Assembly: GCF_000143415.4 (NCBI RefSeq)
Contig: NW_003314333.1
Coordinates: forward strand, 757,207 to 821,206
Direction: 5' to 3'
DNA length: 64,000 bases
Source: Selaginella moellendorffii
Taxonomy: Eukaryota > Plantae > Lycopodiophyta
Made by a program: the position numbers and the translations under genes. The notes beneath the pieces were generated by a model. The model did no database searches, was not told where the DNA came from, and saw only the letters and a list, made by a program, of their open reading frames with translations. Numbering within the stretch: the stretch's first letter is position 1; each line of letters begins with the position of its first letter. Shown here one piece after another: positions 11,601-59,612 of this stretch.

Positions 11601-14500
11601 CTAAAGATGAAAATGGTAATCCATGATATGATTACTTTATAAAATGATTTAATGTTCAATGAGGATATCAAACTTCATATATAGGTGGTGGAGTTGTGAG
11701 CAACAAATCCCTAAGCCCTAAAGTGGAGCTGAAAAGGTGCCGTGTGGCAGTGGTCAAAGCAAAAGTCTAACAAGCTTAACACATTTAGACCAAAAACCCT
11801 GACTCGGAAAGTCGAGAGTGGGAGTGAAACTCCTAAATAAGTTCTTGTGGAACAAATATGAAATGATTGGTGAATGAGTTTCTAGAAAAGGACACAAGAG
11901 GAACTGACACATGGCAAGTGTTATGACATATAAAAGTGTTGGGACTAACTCTGAGATGGAATCCAAAAAGGAGTCTGAGATGGAGTCTGAGATGAAATCC
12001 AAGAAAGAGTCCAAGAAGGAGTCCTAGATGGAATCCTAGATGGAATCTAAAAAGGAGTCTAAGAAGAAGTTTGAGATGGAGTCCAAGAAAGAGGCTAAAA
12101 AAGAGTCCAAAATGGAGTTTGAAATAGAATTTAAGAAAGAGTCCGAGAAGGAATTCAAGACAAAATCCAAAATAGAGTCCGAGAAGAAGTCCGAGATGGA
12201 GTTTGAGAAGGAGTCTAAAATGGAGTCCGAGATAGGGACCGAGATTGAGGCCAAGAACGAGACTAAGACCAAAATTGGGGCCGAGACTAGGACTGAGACC
12301 AGGACTAAGACCGAGACCAAGACCGAGACCAAGACTGAGTCCGAGTCTAAATCTGAGTCCGAGTCCGAGTCCAAACCTGAGTCCGAGTTTGAGTTCGAAT
12401 TTGAGTTTGAGTCCAAGTTCAAGTCTAAATCCAAGGGTGAAAGCTCAAAGCGATATCTCCTAGTCTCTAGGGGGTTTGGTGAGCTCCAAAAGGATAATAG
12501 AGGAAGGATTCTAATGGAACTAATTTAGACAGAAAAGGCAATGTGACTAAGGAAGCATATACCCATATAGTGGGTGATGGTATAAGAGGAGTCCAAAGCT
12601 AAAGTAAACACAGATGGATAAGTGGGGTAACTTAGTAAAGTGTTTAAGAGTTGGCTCTAGCTCTCTTGAGAGATCAAATAGTCGATGCTTCTAATCTAAG
12701 TGTGGGTGGCATTATTTATTTGGATATCTTATGTGGCTCATCAGAACCTCACTCTAGCCACATGGCTAGGGCACTTAAGGGCAGAAGGTGGGGAGAGTAC
12801 TCAAAAGGCTTGTATAGAGCCACAGTGTTTCAAAATGTTATTCTAAAGTCTCAGATTATAGAAAAGATGAGAAGCTATCCTTTTGCATAATGACCAAAGG
12901 TATTGTCATATGGTGAGGAAATCCCAAATGTTAGTGGGATTTAGTGGTCGAGCTTTTAGGCCCTAACCCAATAGTAGTGTTGGCAAGCATAGCCATGAAT
13001 GGAAAGGGACTTAGTGGGAACTAAAGAAAGGATATTGGGGAAAGGTGTTCCCTATGTCTCCAGGCATCTTAAGGATGCTAAGGCATAGTTTTATGATGAT
13101 CACTTATTAACAGATGGCCTAGTCTTAGAGAGATAGGACTATGGCATAAGTGGTTTTTGACTATCAATAAGACAAAGGTAAATGGACATGGTTTTAATAT
13201 AACAAACTGATATGTCAGTAGTACCTTTGGGGTGTATATCGTGGGATCAGACACGTGGAGCACTTACACCAAATGCAAAGGCCAAGTGGCATATGCTATT
13301 CATGGGGTTAGCATATCCCCAAGTCAAGAATAAAACTCTATGGTGAGACTCCTCCAAGTGGTAAAAAATGTGGTTAAATGATTAAAATAAAATAGAAAAG
13401 TTTTACATCATGATTTTAGGGGATCCTTTAGCCTATAACACTTTGGTTAAAAGTATCTTATAAGTCATCACACTAGTAAGAGCATCAACTTCCACCCAAC
13501 AAATTAAATAGTCAAAACCAATATGATATATTCATTACCAATAGTCAACTGTGGAAAATGCCTATTAGACTAAATACTATCAACTCAAACAAACCAAAAA
13601 CTACAATTGATTCCATAACATGAAGATGAGTATTATAAGCTTATCATTAGATAAACTATGCATATAGTGGGTTATATCTTGTCTCATCTCCAACTAATAA
13701 AAAAACCTATACAACTTCTTAAGCATATGATAATGTCCCATATACCCTCCTAAAATAGGAGAGTTATGGTAAGTGTAAAGGAAACATGGAATAAGATTAA
13801 AGGCACTATCAAATATAAATGGTTACAAAATAAAGAAGGTTATCTTTAAGGTAATATTAAAAATTTAAATGCATAAACAACAAATTATCAGTAAACAATA
13901 CAAGATCTTCAAAGTCATCATAAAGCATTCAAATCCATAGCTTAACCTTTTAAATCTCCTGAATATCATTCAAAGAAGACAAATTTAACTTCACACCTTA
14001 TAAACATTGATCATCAAACATAAAAATTGCCAACAACATAGAGTAAAAAATCCATTAATAGAAGAATAATAAGCTCCTCAGAAATAGAAAAAGAGAGAGG
14101 AGGGAGAGGAATTTGAGATAGAGCCACACTATTAGTTATTAAACTCTCAAGGCAATAAATAATCTCAAAGTCAAAGTTCTTTGGCTTACAAAATTCTTTG
14201 GCTTTAACAACAAAGTGATTACAATATAATCATCCTTCAGTAGTGTTTGAAAATTATATTAAAATGCATGGAGCTTCTTAAAACCCTAAACTATTATAAA
14301 CATTCTTTTTTTGTTGCAAACTAGTTCAACTTAACTGATTGTAAAGTATAGTTGATGTATGTAATGAAATAATACTAGTTAAAGACATGTCAAACTCTCC
14401 TAGCCACTAGATTAAGGATATATTAGAATATGCCTTTTCAATCCAATGGTTGGAAATTTATATGTATACCATATGTATGTATGTTTTTCACATGTGTATG
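8700..14500. mobile_element. Decayed AT-rich transposon-like block
   Basis: Abrupt drop in GC, visibly very few CpG, no spliceable gene, stop-riddled frames and an internal minisatellite. Termini and class could not be identified. Confidence 0.45.
11950..12435. repeat. Degenerate 6/12-bp minisatellite (GAGTCC/GAGACC/GAGTTT; AAGAAGGAGTCC)
   Basis: Directly visible tandem units that produce spurious ES/ET-rich and DS-rich ORFs. Confidence 0.85.
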
Positions 14501-14852
14501 GCCATACTGGCTAAGGGAGATTCTACTGAATAATTTTCTGCAGCCCTAGGCATTAAAATTTTCTTGAATCCTTTCTTACTCCAATCTGGGTCATCTCTCG
14601 GTCTTGCCATTCGCATTGATCTCAATAGATGAGCTCAACTGCTCTAGTAATAGAAATCAAGATTTAAGTGTCCACGGAGGAAGCACAAATGTAGTTCAAC
14701 CTAGATTCTTTAAAGGTGGGCCTAACGCAAACCTGGGTGGGCAGAAGGTTCGGCACTCTTTTCTTTGTAAAGACTGGCAAAGATTATAAGTCAACACCAA
14801 ACTTTCTCTTGTTATTTGAAAAGGTCGGTATGTGCGATTAGTTCTTGGCAGA

Positions 14853-16271
14853 ATGGCGTCTCCTCCTCACTTCGTTGTAATTCCACTGCCCGTCTATGGC
14901 CACATCTTCCCGATGCTCCATCTCTCCGTGCAGCTCGCCTCCATTGGAAACAAGATCACATTCATCGCCAGCAGTAGGACCAAGACCACCACGCTCTCCA
15001 CCTTCGAATCCAGTCTATCCCAGATCCAAGACCCTCAAACAGTACGTACCAATCTCATCTTTGAGTTTCTCTCCGGCGACGAACTTCTCCAGCAAGGTGG
15101 CGAGCAAGGCTTCCGGGCCAGTCTCGACTGGATGGTCAGCCAGATCACTGCCGTGGACGAAGCAATCGAATCCTGTGTTAGCCGTCACGGTCCAGTTTCC
15201 TGTGTGATCCTCGACTTCATGGTTTTCTTCCTCAAGAACGCAGCGGCAGACAAGAGAAATGCCACCGTTGCGGCCTTGTGGACTGCTTCCGCCCCATGGA
15301 TGCTCCTTTCTTTGCAGATCCAAGCTTTGATCGACGGGGGATATGTTCCACTCACGCCTTCCAATGCTCTGTCCGTCGTCTCCGGCCTCACTGGAGTTCC
15401 ACCCTTGTGCAACTACAAAGACGTTCCGGTGTGCCTGCTCAAGCCGGCGACAGACCAGCAGATTGAGGAGATAGCAGTGGTCTCGAAGATGTTTTTGGAG
15501 GTGCCATGGCTGCTGGTGAACACGATCCCGGAGCTGGACAGTCGATCGCTGCGCTACGTCCGTGAGCTCGGAGTTAAGTCAGTCGCAATTGGTCCTCTGC
15601 TGCCACTCCCGGTGAAGGACTCTTGTAGAGCTCCAGACGATGTTCCGGTTCTCTCCTGGCTAGACCAGAAGCCACCCCAGTCTGTCGTCTTTATCTGCTT
15701 TGGAACGCTGGCGGAGAACACGCTGGAGCAGCTCCAAGAACTTGCGAGTGCGCTGGAGGAGCTGACGAACCAGAGTTTCCTGTGGGTGCTGCGACCGTCG
15801 CAGCAGTCGTGCCTGAGCGAGGATTTCAAGCGACGAACAGCTGCCAGAGGTAAGATCGTTCCCTGGTGCTCGCAGCTCCAAGTTCTCAGCCACCCTTCCA
15901 TCGGTGGATTCGTGACGCACTGCGGCTGGAACTCCATCCTTGAGAGCCTGAGTTGTGGCGTCCCAATGCTCGGCTGGCCGTGCCTTGGAGAGCAGAGTCT
16001 CAACTCCAAATACTTAGCGGATGTGTGGAAAGCCGGCACCAGAATTGTTCCTTACAATCCCGATGGCAGCAACAGGGTAGTGAACCGGTCCGAGGTATCG
16101 AAAGAAATCGCCCTTTTGATGACAGGCGAGGAAGGACAAGAGTTGAGGAATCGTGCTCGCGAGATTCAGAAGGCGAGTACGCGAGCCATGCAGTCGTCAG
16201 TCGATGAACTTCGGCGCTGGGTTGCTCAACTGTTCCATCAGGGAGAAGCTTCAGTGGAAGAACAAGTCTAA
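14853..16271 (+). CDS. UDP-glycosyltransferase (GT1), intronless (UGT-A)
   Basis: PHFVVIPLPVYGHIFPM (catalytic His), VVFICFGT, PSPG box [44 protein letters not shown]. Confidence 0.95.
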   Translation: MASPPHFVVIPLPVYGHIFPMLHLSVQLASIGNKITFIASSRTKTTTLSTFESSLSQIQDPQTVRTNLIFEFLSGDELLQQGGEQGFRASLDWMVSQITAVDEAIESCVSRHGPVSCVILDFMVFFLKNAAADKRNATVAALWTASAPWMLLSLQIQALIDGGYVPLTPSNALSVVSGLTGVPPLCNYKDVPVCLLKPATDQQIEEIAVVSKMFLEVPWLLVNTIPELDSRSLRYVRELGVKSVAIGPLLPLPVKDSCRAPDDVPVLSWLDQKPPQSVVFICFGTLAENTLEQLQELASALEELTNQSFLWVLRPSQQSCLSEDFKRRTAARGKIVPWCSQLQVLSHPSIGGFVTHCGWNSILESLSCGVPMLGWPCLGEQSLNSKYLADVWKAGTRIVPYNPDGSNRVVNRSEVSKEIALLMTGEEGQELRNRAREIQKASTRAMQSSVDELRRWVAQLFHQGEASVEEQV

Positions 16272-16525
16272 GCTTCGTGGCGCAGCTCGAGAAAAAAACA
16301 ATGTTGACAATTGATTCCTAGCCAACTTTTTCGGTAAAAGCCTCCAAACACGTCAGACAACGCATTTCTCTCCTCGAATAAATGTGGTTAGCCAAAGCAC
16401 ACCTACCAAAAAAAGAAGACTGAGGCGATCTCTACCAGCAAAGCACCACAAAAGAATGAAAACGATACCGAAAGAAGGCCAGCTGGTAAGTCGTGAGCCC
16501 GATGGTCGTCCTCTCATCGCATTCC

Positions 16526-17843
16526 ATGGCTTCTCCACACTTGGTTGTGGTTCCACTGCCGCTCTATGGCCACATCCCCAATGCTTCGATTGTCAGTCCA
16601 GCTCGCATCACTGCGAAACAAAATTACCTTCATCGCCAGCGGAAGAACACAGACTGCCACGCTCTCGGCATTCGACTCGAGCCTCTCCCACATCGATGAC
16701 GCCGAAACGCCGCGTAGCGGGCTTAGCTTTGAGTTCATTCCGATGAAGACGGCGTCGAGCTCGAGCAAGGCGGTGAGGAAGGAATCTGGGCCGTTTTGCG
16801 ATGGATGAGCGCGCAGCACGGTACCGTAGATCAAATAGTCGAGTCGTCCGTTAGCCGCCACGGCCAGATCTCCTGCGTGATCCTCGACTTCCTGGCTCTC
16901 CGTGGCTGACAAGCACAAGGCTTCCGTGGATTTGTTTTGGACGCCATCTCCGCCTTGGCTACTTCTCTCTCTCCAAGTGAAAGCTTTCGTGGACGGGGGC
17001 TATGCCATTCTCATGCCTTCCAATGCTCTCTCTACTGTCTCGGGCCTCACCGGAGTTCCAGCTCTGTGTAACTACATGGACGTTCCAACGAGCATGCTGA
17101 TCAGCAACTTGAAAGGGCTGGCACAGTACCTGATCGAGGTACCATGGGTGATCATGAACACGATCCCGGAGCTGGACTCTCAGTCTCTTGCTTGCATCCG
17201 CCAACTCGGAGTGAAGCTGGTCACACTCGGTCCTTCGCTGCCGATAGCTCCGGATGATCTTCCAATCATCACCCCTCTCGGTTCTTTACATCTGCTTTGG
17301 AACGGTGGCAGAGCACTCGGTGGAGCAGCTCCAAGAACTCGCCAGCTCACTGGAAGAGCTCGTCAGCAACCACCAGAATTTTTCTTCTTGTGGGCTTTGC
17401 GTCGATCCCAGCAGCCGAGCTTGAGCGAGGAGTTCCAGCGAAGAACTTCTGCGAGAGGTCTGGTCGTTCCTTGGTGCTCGCAGCTCCAGATTCTAAGCGT
17501 CCCTCGGTTGGTGGATTCGTCACGCACTGCGGCCTAGAGAGCTTGAGCTGTGGAGTTCCACTGGTCGGCTGGCCATCTATCGCGGAGCAAAGCCTCAATG
17601 CAAATGGATGTGTGGACGGTCGGCGCCAGGATCGTCCCTCGCAATCCCGATGCCAGCACCAGGCTTGTCGCTCGATCCGAAATATCCGACGCCATCGCCA
17701 CGGTGATGATCGCCGAGGAAGGGCGGGAGATGAGGAGCCGCCCTCGCGAGATCCCGAAGGCTGCCGATCAAGCAATGCGATCTTCCCTAGCCGAGGCAAG
17801 ACGCTGGGTGGAGAATTTCTCACCGTTAGAAGATGCTACCTAG
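16526..17843 (+). pseudogene. Frameshifted UGT pseudogene, inverted copy of 25588-27003
   Basis: Near-identical DNA to UGT-B but split over several frames by small deletions; WNSI is lost from the PSPG box (THCG|LESLSCG). Confidence 0.9.
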
Positions 17844-50689: not shown

Positions 50690-51277
50690 TCAATAAGCCG
50701 GACTGTTGAAGCTGTCTTGTCGAGGCCCTCGGATCCTCCCATACAAGCTAAACGCTGGTGCCTGGTTTGTCTTCGGCAAGAAGTACGCTCCCGGTCCTGG
50801 AGAATGAGGTCGCTCTCACGAGAAATCTTACCCCGGATGCTGAAAGATGGAGAGCTCCCTTCACTCTCGACGTTGTAAGCCCCCTGTCCCGGACTCCGGC
50901 TAGTCTGCTGGACTGGAACCTTTCCCGGCCTAGTCTCGAGTGGAAAATCATTCCATTCGTTGTTCTTCTTCACCAGGCCATAGATCGTAAGCGATGGACT
51001 CGTCCGCTGTGCATAGGACCGTCCATGGAAGATCTCGATGTGTAGGAGCCGGGGCTGGGGGTGTCACGTCCTGATAACTCGAGAAGCTTTTCTGCATCGA
51101 GAAGGATGGAGAGGAGCTCATGCGCTGCGGACTGTATGATCCCGGGCCGGGAGAGTTTGGAGTTCTTGGCGAGCTTTGTCTCGACTGCATGGTGAAAGCC
51201 GGGCCTCTGGGAAGCCGCACAGAGTAAGTACCGGGGCCTGGAAAATCGCTTTCTCGTGGAGACGTCGCCTTGCCAGT
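50690..51277 (-). pseudogene. Detached 3' segment of the SHIPPO/ODF3-like gene, including the likely original C-terminus
   Basis: Matches 57320-57947 and continues SPGPGAYFLPKTNQAPAFSLYGRIRGPRQDSFNSPAY* (stop 50690); frameshifted. Confidence 0.8.
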
Positions 51278-51677
51278 CTCTTGGAAAATATTAAAACATT
51301 CAATAACTAGAAAATGTATTTTTACCTTGGCACTATCAGCCAGTGCTGGTAATGGATCACTTGCAGAAGTAGTAGTCCCAACCTTAATACAAATTAATTA
51401 GATTAAATAATTATCTTGAAAATTCTGCCAGAATTCGTCCAGCCCGAAAGTTGGTGCGGGTCCTTATCTCCAAAATCGATCAATTAATCAATGCAATAAT
51501 TTTATAAAGAGTTTTAGCAAAAGTTTCAACATGCAATTCTAAATTGAATTCTTCCTCTATAATTTTGCTCCCGGACAAAAGAGTTAAAGCCACGGAGGCT
51601 TGAAAGATATCTGTCTCTTTACTTGCACAGTGAGACTACGATCAATAAATTCTGGCTTCCAGCCCCATCGCAAGACC

Positions 51678-53831
51678 ATGGATCGCCTTGCGCTCGGCCT
51701 ATCTCTTCTCTTCTCGTCTCTCCTTGTAAGTAGTTCTTTCCAACTTCTATCGTTCAATCGTTACTAAAGCTGGGGATTCCTGTTTGGCAGCTTTCCGAAT
51801 GCAGTGACATAATCTCCACGAGTTTCGCCGATGAAGCCTCGCCTCTGGGGGCATTCGAATCGGCTCGCTTCGGCGAGCAGATGAGAAGAGGCGTTTTCAC
51901 GGCCGATGCAAAGCTTTGCCACCGTGCAGGATTTTTTTGTCATCCTTATGGAAGGCATGGAGGCAATGCCCACTTTGGCGATGCTGCAGAGAAGACCGCC
52001 CTTGCAGCAAGCAAGCTCGGAGGGAATGCTCACTTTGGTGACTTCCATGACCGTGTACGCTCGCTGGAAGCCAGAGATCTTGGCGGCAATGCACACTTTG
52101 GTGACTTCAAAGATCATGGAGCTCTGGGTGGAAACGCTCACTTTGGTGACTTTCATAAGGATCACGGGCTTGGCGGAAATGCTCACTTTGGTGACACTGG
52201 ATTGGGTGGAAACGCGCACTTTGGTGACTTCAAAGACCACGGATCATTGGGTGGAAATGCACACTTTGGCGACTTCAAAGACCATGACTTGGGTGGCAAT
52301 GCCCACTTTGGCGATTTCAAATCATTGGGTGGCAACGCCCATTTTGGCGATTTCAAAGACCATGGTTTGGGTGGCAACGCGCACTTTGGCGATTTCAAAG
52401 ATCATGGTTTCGGTGGTAATGCTCACTTTGGTGACTTCAAAGACCAAAGTTTGGGTGGAAATGGTCATTTCAGAGACTTTAAATACCATGGATCATTGGG
52501 TGGTAACGCCCACTTTGGCGACTTCAAAGACCATGGTTTGGGTGGCAACACGCACTTTGGCGATTTCAAAGATCATGGTTTGGATGGTAATGCTCCCTTT
52601 GGTGACTTCAAAGACCAAAGTTTGGGTGGAAATGGTCATTTCGGAGACTTTAAATACCATGGATCATTGGGTGGTAACGCCCACTTTGGCAACTTCAAAG
52701 ACCATGGTTTGGGTGGCAACGCGCACTTTGGCGATTTCAAAGATCATGGTTTGGGTGGTAATGCTCACTTTGGTGACTTCAAAGACCAAAGTTTGGGTGG
52801 CAATGCTCACTTTGGCGACTTTAAGGACCATGGCAATGGAGACTTCAAAGGTTTAGGTGGCAATGCTCACTTTGGGGACTTCAAAGACCATGGTTTAGGC
52901 GTAAATGCTCACTTTGGTGATGCTTCTCTAGGTGGAAATGCTCACTTTGGTGACCACGGATTAGGAGGAAATGCTCACTTTGGCGATGCTTCTGTCAAAC
53001 CAAGCACTAGTTGCAAGAAGAACATGCCGCTGTATTTGATCCAGATTTTTACTGAGTACGAGGAAGAGGGTTATGGAGGAAGGAAGTCACTGCACTCTAT
53101 GGACTGGGCAACCATCAAAGCCTTAATAGCGAAATGCTCCCCTGGAATGCTCCATCACTTCTTCACACTGGAAGAACTCCGACAAAGAAACGGTAAGTCC
53201 AAACATTCCTTTTGCAAACTTATCTTCTTACTCGTACTTGTGTAAAATCTTGACAGGAACTGAAAGTGTCCTCCCAAACATCCGTGACACTTATCCTCCA
53301 CGGGCACTCCTGCCAAGCGCAATGGCTAAGCACACAAACTTCGGTAAGCGGAGCCTTGACTCATACTTGAAAGAGTTTAACGTCCCAAAGGAGTCTCCAC
53401 TGGCAAGAAAAATGGCTTTCACTCTGGAACTCTGCAATGACAATGCTGGGGGGAAGATGAAGTGTGTGGCTTCCATGGAAGAAATGGCCGAGTTCGTCAC
53501 CTCCACCCTTGGCCCTGTGGAGATTACCATGGTGACAGGAAGCAAGGCTTTTGCAGCCGAGGTTGGAAAACCTATCAAGCTTGGCGAGGTCAAGCCCATC
53601 ACGAAAGGCGACACTCTTATGGTCGTCTGCCACACAACTATGTTTCCATACAAAGTTTACTTCTGTCACAAGGTGAGTAGCACCAGCGCTTCCAAAGTAA
53701 ATGTGAAGACCAGCAGTGGCATGGAGCTCACTCCAAACGTTCTGTGCCACAAGATGGGCAAGACTTATGTTTGTCACTGGTTTGTGGAAACGGTCATTAT
53801 GTTCGTTCCCACTGCCACTGTCTATGCTTGA
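51678..53831 (+). CDS. Secreted BURP-domain protein with 24 GGNAHFGD-type repeats; candidate fused burpitide (RiPP) precursor-cyclase of PG1beta ancestry. Exons 51678-51725, 51791-53192, 53257-53831
   Basis: Signal peptide MDRLALGLSLLFSSLL|LSECS; PG1beta-like ASPLGAFESARF...LCHRAGFFC; repeat array; BURP start HFFTLEEL...LPNIRDTYPPRALLP; TLELC...KCVASMEEMAEFVTSTLG; four CH motifs (VCH-x10-CH-x25-CH-x7-CHWF). Both introns are GT-AG and keep the frame. Confidence 0.92.
51959..52987 (+). repeat. Coding tandem array: 24 x 24-nt core with variable spacers and a 171-bp higher-order duplication (52445-52615 ~ 52616-52786)
   Basis: Core ggN-ggN-aaY-gcN-caY-ttY-ggN-gaY with synonymous variation; CAA-AGT units at 52445 and 52616 are 171 bp apart. 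Confidence 0.92.
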
Positions 53832-53846
53832 TTGTATCTAAAAAGC

Positions 53847-53945
53847 TAATAATGATGATGATGTTAATAATAATAATAATAATAAATTTACGCATTAAAA
53901 CATTTTTAATAATAATAATACTAATAATCCTAATCATAATACTTA
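53847..53945. repeat. (ATA/ATG)n low-complexity tract 3' of the BURP gene
   Basis: Directly visible. Confidence 0.75.
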
Positions 53946-54104
53946 TTGGTTTTGGGGTTAACAAAGAAATTATTTGAAATTATTTTTATTTTAAAATATT
54001 TTAAAATATTAAACAACTTCATTATTTTTAAACACATTTAAACTAAACATAGTTATGGTAGTCATAACGTACTTTGGACGCGCGGCTGCCACTTGGCCTC
54101 GTTG

Positions 54105-56347
54105 AGGATTCCATTACGTCCAAAGGAGAACTTTCCAGGACCAGGAACTGACGACGTTGTGTCGAGGCCGAGCTCGCCATCCTTCTCTCTCGGCACTCGC
54201 CGTTTTGTTCCGGAGGACAAAACAGAAAATCCAGGGCCAGGAGCGTACAGGATCATAGGGAAGCCACACGGCCCGCATTTTTCAATCACTGGCAAGCCCC
54301 GAGACTCGTCACCCCGCTCGAGAAGTCAATGTCCCGGAGCCTACAAGTACGAGAATGGAACCATCGGCTATGGTCTACCAGCTTTCACCATCACTGGCAA
54401 GGCGACGTCTCCACGAGAAAGCGATGTTCCAGGCCCCGGTACTTACTCTGTGCGGCTTCCCAGAGGCCCAGCTTTCACCATGTAGTCGAGACAAAGCTCA
54501 CCGAGAACTCCACACTCTCCCAGCCCGGGATCATACAGTCCGCAGCACAGGATGCGAGAAGAGTTATCAGGACGTGACACACCCGGCCCCGGCTCCTACA
54601 CCTCGAGATCTTCCATGGACGGTCCTTCCTTCAGCATGCACGGCCGACTTAGTAGCCCGGCTTCTTCCACTTCCAGGAGCAGCTCTCCGGGACCTGGAGT
54701 GTATACGATCTCTTCCAGGCCAACGAGTCCAAGCCAAAGTTCTTAGGAGGGAGTGGATTCTTTTGAGCTAGATAAAAATTCTTCCTCCACCATCACCATC
54801 ACTATAATTTTTCTTCCATGGTAGCAATAACAACTTTCTAGTGAGCTCTAGGAACTCTCACACTAGCATGGGAACAAGAGCGCCTCAACTAGAGTGTCAG
54901 TGATTAGCTATAAAAGCAAGCAGGATGGTGCTAGCGTCCAGTCCAAGAAGCTCGAGCCTCTAATCACAACCATGGCAGAGAAATCGACACAAAGAACGTT
55001 GCGCTAGACACTTCCAGTTTGGTTTCCACAAACTTTGGAAAGCTGGCTACTTTGTGTGTCAGTGTTGGGACTGGGGCTAGGATGGTACTCGCCGAAGTCC
55101 CAGCCATCTTCGCCAGCTTTCTCGATGGGAAGCTGGCTTGGCGATGGCAAGAGGTGTCACAGTCCTGGACCGGGAGCACACAACGTAAAGAGGAGGCCGG
55201 ACTGTCCAGCCTACACAATGTCTCCTCGGTTTAGAGACGCTGCAAAGGACCGGAGTCCCGGGCCAGGGCAGCACAATCTTCCTGGAACTTTTGGTGGTCC
55301 GGCTTATATCATGGCACGGCGGTTTAACTCGCCTCCCGGAGCTCACAGCGAAGCCATTTGCTTCTTTGTTTCCATCCTAGGCAAAGGTGCCGGCCCGAGG
55401 TGAGAGACAAACACTAGCTGGACCAAGACCGCAGTTGAAGGTTGGTTGAATGCTCATGCAAACGTTCCTGGTCACGGGGTTTATTCCAGCTACAGGCCCG
55501 AGCAGCTGCCGAAGAAGAACAAGGAGAAGTAAAAGGAAGTTGGCTACTTCATCGTCAAGGTGAATCCGAAAGGACCGGCTTACAAGATCACAAAGACGGG
55601 GACCTTCTTGATGCCGGAACCAGATGATCCGGCTTTCAATCCAGAGAGAGGGGAGTCAGGAAGAAGGGACTCTGGCAATGTAGGCAGGAGAGATTCCAGC
55701 TCCAGGAGAAGATCCAGTTTATCTCCAAGGCGGTCGTCGAGTCCTCCACAATCAGATCCAACTCCGGGACCAGGAAGATACCATGACACCGAGTTTCAAA
55801 CAAACGGTCCCTGGAGAACTATCAAGTCGAATTACGTCCAAAGGAGAACTTTCCAGGACCAGGGACTGACAACGTTGTGTTGAGGCTGAGCTCGCCACCC
55901 TTTTCTCTCGGAGGACAAAACAGAAAATCCAGGGCCAGGAGCGTGGCAAGGTGACGTCTCCACGACAAAGCGATGTTCCAGGCCCTGGTACTTACTCTCT
56001 GCGGCTTCCCAGAGGCCCGGCTTTCACCATGCAGTCGAGACAAAGCTCGCCAAGAACTCCAAACTCCCCCGGCCCGGGATCATACAGTTCGCAGTGCAGG
56101 AGCTCCTCTCCATCTTTCTCGATGCGAGAAAAGCTTCCTGAGTTATCAAGACGTGACACCCAGTTACACCTCGAGATCTTCCATGGACGGTCCTTCCTTC
56201 AGCATGCATGGCCGACTTAGCAGCCAAGCTTCTTCCACTTCCAGGAGCAGCTCTCCGGGACCTGGAGCATATACGATCTCTTCCAGGCCAACGAGTCCAT
56301 CATTTATGCTGTATGGCCCGGGAAGAAGAACAATGATTTTCCAGGGC
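54105..56347 (+). pseudogene. Three tandem, permuted, inverted pseudogene fragments of the SHIPPO/ODF3-like gene (about 54105-54745, 54746-55940, 55945-56347)
   Basis: Reverse-complement matches to about 57610-58237, 58100-59380 and 57555-57945; premature stops at 54483 and 55401, plus deletions. Confidence 0.85.
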
Positions 56348-57299: not shown

Positions 57300-59612
57300 T
57301 CATATTTTTCTTAGCAATCTTGGAGAACGAGGACGCTCCTCACAATAAATCTTCTCCTGGATGCTGAAAGATGGAGAGCTTCTTCCACTCTTGACGTTGT
57401 AAGCCCCCTGTCCTGGAGAACGAGGACGCTCCTCACGAGAAATCTTCCCCCGGATGCTGAAAGAGCTTCTTCGGCTTCTCTGCTGGACTGGAAGCTTTCC
57501 CCGGATGCTAAACTCCGGACTCACCCGGCCTAGTTTCGGGCAGTACGCTCCGGACCCTGGAAAATCATTCCATTCGTTGTTCTTCACCGGGCCATACATC
57601 GTAAATGATGGACTCGTTGGCCTGGAAGAGATAGTATACGCTCCAGGTCCCGGAGAGCTGCTCCTGGAAGTGGAAGAAGCCGGGCTACTAAGTCGGCCGT
57701 GCATGCTGAAGGAAGGACCGTCCATGGAAGATCTCGAGGTGTAGGAGCCGGGGCCGGGGGTGTCACGTCCTGATAACTCTTCTCGCATCCTGTGCTGCGG
57801 ACTGTATGATCCCGGGCTGGGAGAGTTTGGAGTTCTTGGTGAGCTTTGTCTCGACTGCATGGTGAAAGCCGGGCCTCTGGGAAGCCGCACAGAGTAAGTA
57901 CCGGGGCCTGGAACATCGCTTTCTCGTGGAGACGTCGCCTTGCCAGTGATGGTGAAAGCTGGTAGACCATAGCCGATGGTTCCATTCTCGTACTTGTAGG
58001 CTCCGGGACCGGGACTTCTCGAGCGGGGTGACGAGTCTCGGGGCTTGCCAGTGATTGAAAAATGCGGGCCGTGTGGCTTCCCTATGATCCTGTACGCTCC
58101 TGGCCCTGGATTTTCTGTTTTGTCCTCCGGAACAAAACGGCGAGTGCCGAGAGAGAAGGATGGCGAGCTCGGCCTCGACACAACGTCGTAAGTTCCTGGT
58201 CCTGGAAAGTTCTCCTTTGGACGTAATGGAATCCTGGACTTGATAGTTATCCAGGGACCGTTTGTTTGAAACTCGGCGTCCTGGTGTTCTCCCGGTCCCG
58301 GAGTTGGATCTGGTTGTGGAGGACCCGACGGCCGCCTCGGAGATAAACTGGATCTTCTCCTGGAGCTGGAACCTCTCCTGTCTAGATTGCCAGAGTCCCT
58401 TCTTCCTGACTCCCCTCTCTCTGGATTGAAAGCCGGATCATCCGGTTCCGGCATCAAGAAGGTCCCCGTCTTTGTGATCTTGTAAGCCGGTCCTTTCGGA
58501 TTCACCTTGACGATGAAGTAGCCAACTTCCTTTTTCTTCTCCTTCTTCTTCTTCGGCAGATGCTCGGGCCTGTAGCTGGAATAAACCCCGTGACCAGGAA
58601 CGTTTGCATGAGCATTCAACGAACCTTCAACCGCTGTCTTGGTCCAGCTAGTGTTTGTCTCTCGCATCGGGCCGGCACCTTTGCCTAGGACGGACAACAA
58701 AGAAGCAAATGGCTTCGGGCTGTGAGCTCTGGGAGGCGAGTTAAACCGCGGCGCCATGGTGTAAGCCGGACCACCAAAAGTTCCTGGAAGATTGTGCTGC
58801 CCCGGCCCGGGACTCCGGTCCTTTGCAGCGTCTCTAAACCGAGGAGACATCGTGTAGCCTGGACCGTCCGGCCTCCTCTTTACGTAGTGTGCTCCTGGTC
58901 CGGGATTGTGAGACCTCTTGCCATCGCCAAGCCGGCTTCCCATCGAGAAAGCTGGCGAAGATGGCTGGGACTTCGGCGAGTACCATCCCGGCCCCGGTCC
59001 CGGCGATGACGATCCTCCACGCAAAGTAGCCGGCTTTCCAAAGTTCGTGGAAACCAAACTGGATGTGTCTAGCGCGACGTTCTTGGAGCTGGAAGTTTGT
59101 GTCGATTTCTCTGCCATGGTTGTGATCGGGAGCTTTAGAGGCTCGAGCTTCTTGGACTGGACGCTGGCACCATCCTGCTTCTCAGAGATCCCACTGCTCC
59201 TATAGCTAATCACCGGTACTCTAGTTGACAAGCTCTTGTTCCCCATGCTAGTGTGAGAGTTCCTGGAGCTCACCAGAGAGTTGCTGCTGCTACCATGGAA
59301 GAAAAATGGTGGTGGAGGAGGAAGAACCTCTATCTCGTCAAGCTCGCAAAGCTTAGCTCGAAAGAATCCACTCCCTCCTAAAATCTCTGGCCTGGGGACG
59401 CTGTTGTGGAGGAGCCTGGGATGAAATACAGTGCTGCCTCGACAAGAAGGATCGCAAGCCTGTGAGAGATTGCCTGCTACTCGTCTCGGAGAGCTTGTGA
59501 TTCCAATTCCAGCACTGCTCCAAGCGGATCTGGGAGTGGTGCCGCCGCCGCCACCGCCGCCGTCCCAGTTCGTGTCGTGACCACTGCGCCAAAGAGCTGG
59601 CAGTTTGATCAT
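57300..59612 (-). CDS. Sperm-tail PG-rich repeat (SHIPPO/ODF3-like) protein, probably 3'-truncated
   Basis: About 14 P-G-P-G-x-Y/H...P-x-F/Y-S/T repeats with roughly 35-aa periodicity; intronless; the last residues (RLLRKI*) are read from unrelated AT-rich DNA. Confidence 0.82.
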   Translation of the reverse strand: MIKLPALWRSGHDTNWDGGGGGGGTTPRSAWSSAGIGITSSPRRVAGNLSQACDPSCRGSTVFHPRLLHNSVPRPEILGGSGFFRAKLCELDEIEVLPPPPPFFFHGSSSNSLVSSRNSHTSMGNKSLSTRVPVISYRSSGISEKQDGASVQSKKLEPLKLPITTMAEKSTQTSSSKNVALDTSSLVSTNFGKPATLRGGSSSPGPGPGWYSPKSQPSSPAFSMGSRLGDGKRSHNPGPGAHYVKRRPDGPGYTMSPRFRDAAKDRSPGPGQHNLPGTFGGPAYTMAPRFNSPPRAHSPKPFASLLSVLGKGAGPMRETNTSWTKTAVEGSLNAHANVPGHGVYSSYRPEHLPKKKKEKKKEVGYFIVKVNPKGPAYKITKTGTFLMPEPDDPAFNPERGESGRRDSGNLDRRGSSSRRRSSLSPRRPSGPPQPDPTPGPGEHQDAEFQTNGPWITIKSRIPLRPKENFPGPGTYDVVSRPSSPSFSLGTRRFVPEDKTENPGPGAYRIIGKPHGPHFSITGKPRDSSPRSRSPGPGAYKYENGTIGYGLPAFTITGKATSPRESDVPGPGTYSVRLPRGPAFTMQSRQSSPRTPNSPSPGSYSPQHRMREELSGRDTPGPGSYTSRSSMDGPSFSMHGRLSSPASSTSRSSSPGPGAYTISSRPTSPSFTMYGPVKNNEWNDFPGSGAYCPKLGRVSPEFSIRGKLPVQQRSRRSSFSIRGKISREERPRSPGQGAYNVKSGRSSPSFSIQEKIYCEERPRSPRLLRKI

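Follow-up and report, generated by a model that had tools for sequence, protein, structure and literature searches.

BURP domains have only lately been recognised as copper-dependent peptide cyclases, and to our knowledge the whole family is represented by a single crystal structure. Published work traces two type-2 copper sites to the four Cys-His (CH) pairs of the domain: HH-A is formed by the histidines of CH1 and CH2, and HH-B by those of CH3 and CH4. A disulfide staples each of the two sites. In 8SY3 the HH-B site was seen to hold Cu(II), and in the cyclase ArbB2 mutating the copper-site histidines abolishes activity (PMC12186524, PMC12164859, PMC12874468).

Several described systems resemble the gene analysed here. 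In AhyBURP, a USP-type cyclase of peanut (PDB 8SY2/8SY3), the CH pairs are spaced by x10 and then ~x25 residues, CH3 and CH4 are separated by a 24-residue linker, a Trp follows, and the core contains Tyr and Trp. PG1-beta-like proteins, such as the tomato PG1 beta subunit (AroGP), consist of a signal peptide, an N-terminal segment, a 14-residue repeat array and a C-terminal BURP domain. Within Selaginella itself, fused burpitide precursors combine repeats and BURP domain in one layout; those considered here are P0029 of S. uncinata, a putative lyciumin precursor, and SkrBURP of S. kraussiana, a proven copper cyclase (PMC11253845). In addition, lycopod BURP genes have been listed as SmPG1-6 and treated as PG1-beta-like (PMC9121072).

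The S. moellendorffii gene shares features with each of these systems, and differs from them in others. Like AhyBURP it has the BURP fold and the four Cys-His pairs in the x10 and ~x25 arrangement, but its CH3-CH4 linker is only 7 residues long and is followed by Phe, its repeats hold His and Phe in place of Tyr and Trp, and the sequence identity between the two domains is merely 21-23%. It matches the PG1-beta-like layout throughout, RefSeq applies the PG1-beta-type name to the Selaginella genes, and among its closest canonical domains, at 33-39% identity, are some from proteins of ~610-635 aa whose 14-residue repeats carry F-x-x-Y; however, Tyr is absent from the Selaginella repeats (GGNAHFGDFKDH), the domain lacks the CH3-CH4 flap, 9 residues separate its surface cysteines as against 11-12, and our tree gives the protein no supported place inside the PG1-beta group. 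With the fused precursors it shares the genus and the repeat-plus-BURP layout, whereas the cores of SkrBURP and P0029 carry Tyr/Trp and P0029 has a canonical 25-residue linker (the retrieved sequences included P0029 and not SkrBURP).

Gene structure and the short CH3-CH4 linker

The window, by which we mean the whole 64,000-nucleotide stretch of S. moellendorffii DNA that was analysed, corresponds to scaffold GL377637.1 (GCA_000143415.2), with 100% identity over 22,154 bases. The gene within it is RefSeq XP_024515913.1, a protein of 674 aa with the product name 'polygalacturonase non-catalytic subunit AroGP3', and each of its three exons, translated separately, equals the matching part of that protein (Table 1). 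It and its copies are already annotated genes, and belong to the lycopod BURP genes treated as PG1-beta-like. The protein starts with what looks like a signal peptide and continues through 23 His/Phe repeat units to the FF motif and the BURP domain. Exon 2 alone encodes the remainder of the signal peptide, the N-terminal segment, all 23 repeat units and a linker, and at its end the FF motif with which the BURP domain opens (HHFF, from residue 471). The repeats have a period of 42 nt (Tandem Repeats Finder), 18 of the 23 units carry a strict GGNAHFGD, and in translation His and Phe are present in the array while Tyr and Trp are absent. HFGD repeats were not found in any other retrieved protein. 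Intron 2 holds a 4-nt indel that is polymorphic among the gene copies.

Table 1. Features of the S. moellendorffii BURP gene; positions are those of the window, and residue numbers are those of the exon-3 protein unless XP_024515913.1 is named.
Feature	Position	Strand	Description and basis
Exon 1	51678-51725	+	Start codon and signal peptide residues 1-16 (MDRLALGLSLLFSSLL); GT donor after
Intron 1	51726-51790	+	65 nt, GT..AG; splice dinucleotides, exon-by-exon match to XP_024515913.1
Exon 2	51791-53192	+	Residues 17-483 of XP_024515913.1, by translation
Intron 2	53193-53256	+	64 nt, GT..AG, phase 1; split codon G/GA = Gly, residue 484 of XP_024515913.1
Exon 3	53257-53831	+	BURP domain body and stop; Pfam, AlphaFold2, VIA-align
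Surface Cys pair (CC-S)	53433-53465	+	Cys59 and Cys69; alignment columns
CH1	53628-53633	+	C124/H125; translation; invariant column of alignment
CH2	53664-53669	+	C136/H137; translation; invariant column of alignment
CH1-x10-CH2 (HH-A pair)	53628-53669	+	His125/His137; model strands 119-127, 133-151
CH3	53745-53750	+	C163/H164; translation; invariant column of alignment
CH4	53772-53777	+	C172/H173; translation; invariant column of alignment
CH3-KMGKTYV-CH4 (HH-B pair)	53745-53777	+	His164/His173; 7-residue linker, usual 24-26
Phe182	53802-53804	+	Family's C-terminal Trp position (CH4 + 9); translation, alignment

The exon-3 frame (53259-53831, + strand) translates into an uninterrupted 190-residue C-terminal domain followed by a stop codon, and reads VVCH-x10-CH-x25-CH-KMGKTYV-CH-WFVETVIM-F. 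This reproduces exactly the CH string and the 7-residue CH3-CH4 gap that a sequence-only reading of the same DNA had claimed, and its coordinates hold as well: the CH1-CH2 and CH2-CH3 spacings, 10 and 25, are canonical and the CH3-CH4 spacing is not. That reading had also described a clean in-frame loss of ~18 aa, which proved accurate, since in the multiple alignment the gap covers the conserved segment D-T-S-x-W-x-P-x-H-x-A-F-x-x-L-x-x-K-P, of which 18 residues are lost in frame. The near-invariant Gly that follows the deleted segment, four residues N-terminal to CH4 and 94% conserved in the family, is retained.

The Pfam BURP profile (PF03181) matches exon 3 with an E-value of 2.4e-30 (106 bits, cutoff 27) and XP_024515913.1 with 1.3e-30 over residues 473-650; of the 216 profile positions the alignment reaches 179-180, the point at which the deleted segment would follow. 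Both cysteines of the surface pair lie in columns that are at least 90% Cys among 124 aligned domains, and the spacer between them is 9 residues, compared with the C-x11-12-C by which the motif is defined (PMC12874468).

Two further observations concern the DNA in and beside this exon. A consensus-like 5' splice site (AAG/GTGAGT, 53671-53678), unused by the RefSeq model, lies just past CH2, and straight after the stop codon the 3' flank becomes very AT-rich and microsatellite-like, with runs of ATA/ATG triplets (53840-54040).

Predicted structure of the shortened domain

The exon-3 domain was modelled with AlphaFold2 from a 124-sequence alignment, yielding a mean pLDDT of 94.1 and a pTM of 0.87; AlphaFold2 builds no metal, and family geometry may carry over into such a model from the alignment. 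Only the entries for the peanut BURP cyclase gave significant matches in the PDB (with Foldseek, E 1.5e-8 to 8SY3), and VIA-align superposed the model on 8sy2_B with Z 12.0 and an rmsd of 2.3 A over 129 residues, the next unrelated entry scoring Z 3.7. The sequence-only reading had proposed comparing a predicted structure with a solved cyclase, and this yielded a confident BURP fold.

The model places CH3 on strand 160-166 and CH4 on strand 169-174, with a two-residue turn (Gly167-Lys168) between them. In a canonical relative modelled identically (the P0003 domain, pLDDT 96.4), the equivalent strands are separated by coil 167-176, helix 177-182 and coil 183-190. Because the comparator has a coil-helix-coil where the Selaginella model has a two-residue turn, the deletion is predicted to remove one discrete excursion and to leave the ligand-bearing strands as a tight hairpin.

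By register arithmetic, a turn at 167-168 would pair residues 166/169, 165/170 and 164/171, and Cys163 with Cys172. Cys163 would then sit opposite Cys172 in disulfide geometry, as secondary structure and register together suggest, and His164 and His173 would point to one face, along with Met166. The CH1-x10-CH2 hairpin of the same model has an identical Cys-opposite-Cys register. Met166 itself is two residues past His164 (Lys165-Met166, 53751-53756), on what the register suggests is the face of the HH-B histidines. Methionine residues flank the copper sites of AhyBURP according to reviews, and one may speculate that Met166 plays such a copper-flanking part.

Short linkers in the BURP family and the five Selaginella copies

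To place the short linker within the family we searched 1.84 billion representatives exhaustively with HMMER, which returned 427 matches. The Selaginella cluster itself was alone in being close, the next best match being 39% identical. Word-index searches turned up no orthologue in other species: those with exon 2 and with the BURP region of P0002 brought up the S. moellendorffii clusters only, and one with exon 3 alone gave no match, the relatives being full-length proteins beyond the length range of that search. Spacings were counted in the 131 retrieved family representatives that have four CH pairs. CH1 and CH2 were 10 residues apart in all 131, and CH3 and CH4 were 24-26 apart in 116; a CH3-CH4 spacing of 7-22 was found in 14, namely two entries from the Selaginella family and 12 others, and a spacing of exactly 7 in three, two of which are again the Selaginella entries. 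Named proteins with short linkers are Gb_00403 of Ginkgo (11 residues), XP_020248567.1 of Asparagus (14) and KAL4204421.1 of Amborella (19); unnamed transcripts have linkers of 7, 10, 17 and 18 residues, and in the lycophyte Diphasiastrum the linker has 21.

A tree was built without the linker columns and is unrooted. Linkers of 20 residues or fewer require 7 changes on it, and well-supported branches make at least 4 of these unavoidable; shortening is thus recurrent, with four separate events as the minimum and seven as the probable number. These short-linker proteins have independently shortened the same CH3-CH4 excursion and kept the four CH pairs, as the Selaginella domain has, but they belong to unrelated lineages without His/Phe repeats and most of them retain the C-terminal Trp; none of them is known to have been characterised. 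Because other plant BURP proteins have repeatedly shortened the linker, the BURP fold tolerates loss of the flap. The nearest row to the Selaginella protein by path length is P0029 of S. uncinata, and given this canonical relative and the canonical majority in the family, we infer that the deletion was derived within the Selaginella lineage, at a node that lacks support in this unrooted tree. As far as sampled, this variant of the domain is specific to a few secreted, PG1-beta-like proteins with His/Phe repeats that make up a small family in S. moellendorffii.

The deleted segment is otherwise well conserved in the family (Thr 89%, Trp 78%, His 71%, Phe 83%, Leu 85%, Pro 81%). The terminal Trp is a different matter. 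The sequence-only reading was right that Trp is replaced by Phe, but had taken this to be atypical, and of the 124 aligned domains 104 have W in this column and 14 have F; Phe at this position is thus an ordinary variant, found in 11-13% of the family. A link between loss of the loop and loss of the Trp was considered and rejected, with Trp kept in 7 of 9 short-loop rows and no trend between loop length and terminal Trp in an independent-pairs test. A general tie between short loops and His/Phe repeats was likewise rejected: the sequence-only reading had asked whether short-loop paralogues carry similar repeats, and none of the other short-loop BURP proteins has them.

There are five annotated copies of the gene in S. 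moellendorffii, at three loci on GL377637.1 and two on GL377630.1. Besides the window copy, GL377637.1 carries a tandem pair (XP_024515918.1 and XP_024515919.1) 9 kb past the window end, and GL377630.1 carries the pair XP_024514722.1 and XP_024514723.1 with identical flanking genes, which we take to be the other haplotype. All five copies share the ending CH-KMGKTYV-CH-WFVETVIM-F and all five reading frames are open, and the repeat number varies among them from 17 to 23 units. Across the copies, the BURP exon varies at 21 nucleotide sites, 16 of them silent and 5 replacement. Silent changes fall at codons 160, 161 and 167 (the last being Gly167), adjoining and within the short linker, and the two replacements closest to the linker lie C-terminal to Phe182. 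Pairwise pN/pS ranges from 0.03 to 0.29, and 16 silent changes out of 21, compared with 22% silent sites, gives a binomial p of 2.3e-7. Because most changes are silent and pN/pS is well below 1, we conclude from the copies that the BURP domain is under purifying selection and that the deletion is fixed in this small gene family.

Some features of the surroundings may bear on how the copies multiplied. The window shares a block with a GL377630.1 paralogue (window 51273-54104 against 14099-16856 of the retrieved GL377630.1 region, L001), spanning from ~400 bp upstream to ~270 bp downstream of the gene and ending at PGPG-repeat sequences, where the sharing stops; this suggests that a ~2.8-kb gene cassette was duplicated into a PGPG-repeat region and so gave rise to the window copy. 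Inverted PGPG-rich copies, 93-98% complementary, flank the gene (51094-51284 against 54393-54552 and 55935-56125), a second inverted PGPG-rich set pairs 54105-54731 with 57609-58235, and the 5 kb downstream of the gene is a nest of inverted repeats; an assembly gene call on the PGPG-rich sequence has a faint Pfam match to the SHIPPO repeat (sperm-tail PG-rich). Between the tandem BURP genes of GL377630.1 sits a piece, 219 residues long, of a pyridoxal-dependent decarboxylase gene (L001 13227-14504, with the corresponding interval in L003, the region of the GL377637.1 pair), and a full-length copy of 488 aa lies upstream of the pair, so the tandem duplication probably carried part of the neighbouring decarboxylase gene. 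Finally, BURP exons on the same scaffold are closer to each other (pS 0.016-0.039) than presumed alleles across scaffolds (0.063-0.087), a pattern expected from gene conversion among paralogues.

A proposed flap-less BURP domain and its alternatives

Taken with the models, these data make it reasonably probable that the Selaginella domain is a real, fixed and selectively kept BURP variant, in which both putative metal sites are formed and the CuB side is more open. We regard it as a working structural variant, and not an error or a dead gene, because the loss is real, is present in five copies and is under selection. In a canonical BURP domain, CH3 and CH4 lie on neighbouring beta-strands linked by the conserved ~25-residue excursion of coil, short helix and coil; in the Selaginella domain 18 residues of it are gone, and the strands would be joined directly at the conserved Gly by the two-residue turn. 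The 7-residue spacing would set a hairpin register that places Cys163 against Cys172 and the two histidines on the same face, as the model also arranges those of the CH1-x10-CH2 hairpin, and from this register both bis-His, disulfide-stapled metal sites most likely still form. What would be missing is the flap covering the CH3/CH4 (CuB) side, leaving the cleft more open there; that the flap-less domain binds copper, and that substrate access is affected, are likewise expectations drawn from the models. The sequence-only reading had spoken of a remodelled pocket matched to the unusual core, and its first half fits the models, in which the flap by the HH-B pair becomes a tight beta-turn, while for the match to the core there is only co-occurrence in one lineage, that is, one evolutionary event.

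Counted against this view is that the lost segment holds some of the family's best conserved non-ligand residues, so its loss could abolish any activity for which these residues are needed. The searches also brought to light no orthologue in other species that might indicate long-term retention, and purifying selection shows function, not catalysis. The main rival is accordingly a domain that is functional but non-catalytic: the flap lost, peptides would no longer be oxidised, and the domain would help the repeats to fold or reach their target or act as their pro-domain, or the whole His-rich protein would be an apoplastic metal-binding or cell-wall protein. A role of the latter kind has long been proposed for BURP proteins of the PG1-beta and RD22 types, and the RefSeq name, a non-catalytic polygalacturonase subunit, agrees with it, as does the conservation of what was deleted. 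The repeats, moreover, lack Tyr and Trp, the residues that most characterised cyclases cross-link (PMC12186524), and PMC6102523 summarises the classic idea that BURP serves for targeting or anchoring. On the other hand, all five copies strictly retain the surface cysteines along with every one of the four Cys-His pairs, and the predicted hairpin register leaves Cys facing Cys. It is not obvious why a module with a purely structural role should require such features, yet all BURP proteins retain them, whatever their role. Selection, being compatible with a catalytic and a structural role alike, cannot separate the two readings, and we hold the non-catalytic one to be possible, if doubtful.

Decay is a far weaker candidate. 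The sequence-only reading had offered a degenerate, inactive domain as its second option, and a family on its way to pseudogenes, marked by the short linker, could explain the lost conserved residues, the failure to find orthologues elsewhere and the variation in repeat number among copies. Yet all five frames are open, pN/pS is low, the fold prediction is confident, and the CH pairs, surface cysteines and FF motif are all kept, so that we consider decay very improbable. An artefact of the assembly or the annotation deserves hardly any credence, and nor does a private loss-of-function allele; assembly error and private allele had been raised at the outset, and as far as the assemblies show they are refuted. 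The internal GTGAGT donor could in principle be spliced, but splicing from it as the main form was rejected, since CH2 and CH3 would then no longer be canonically spaced, whereas the unspliced reading gives x25 and a confident model; the linker is contiguous DNA, identical at the protein level in five copies that lie on two scaffolds and vary among themselves at 21 nucleotide sites, and the RefSeq models agree.

A bolder extension of the favoured reading is that the flap-less domain is an active copper enzyme acting on its own Tyr/Trp-free GGNAHFGD repeats through the opened CH3/CH4 site, where it might form, for example, His- or Phe-based cross-links. We know of no product from a Tyr/Trp-free His/Phe core, and the short linker by itself is no demonstration of new chemistry; we think this extension unlikely. 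Histidine is among the residues cross-linked in burpitides (PMC12874468). If true, it would mean new burpitide or modified-protein chemistry, as well as a natural experiment indicating that the conserved flap gates substrate choice.

The value of the structural variant that we favour lies chiefly in its being a natural minimal form for structure-function studies of BURP copper enzymes. In the BURP literature covered, which for the AhyBURP structure consisted of secondary sources, we found no mention of a shortened CH3-CH4 linker and no definition of the role of the conserved CH3-CH4 segment. The selected flap-less domain and the independent short linkers of Ginkgo, Asparagus and Amborella are ready-made minimal variants, which could probe whether the segment's job is to cover CuB, to gate substrate or to make a dimer contact. 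They also bear on how the family is searched, as motif filters that demand an x25-26 spacing miss short-linker BURP proteins.
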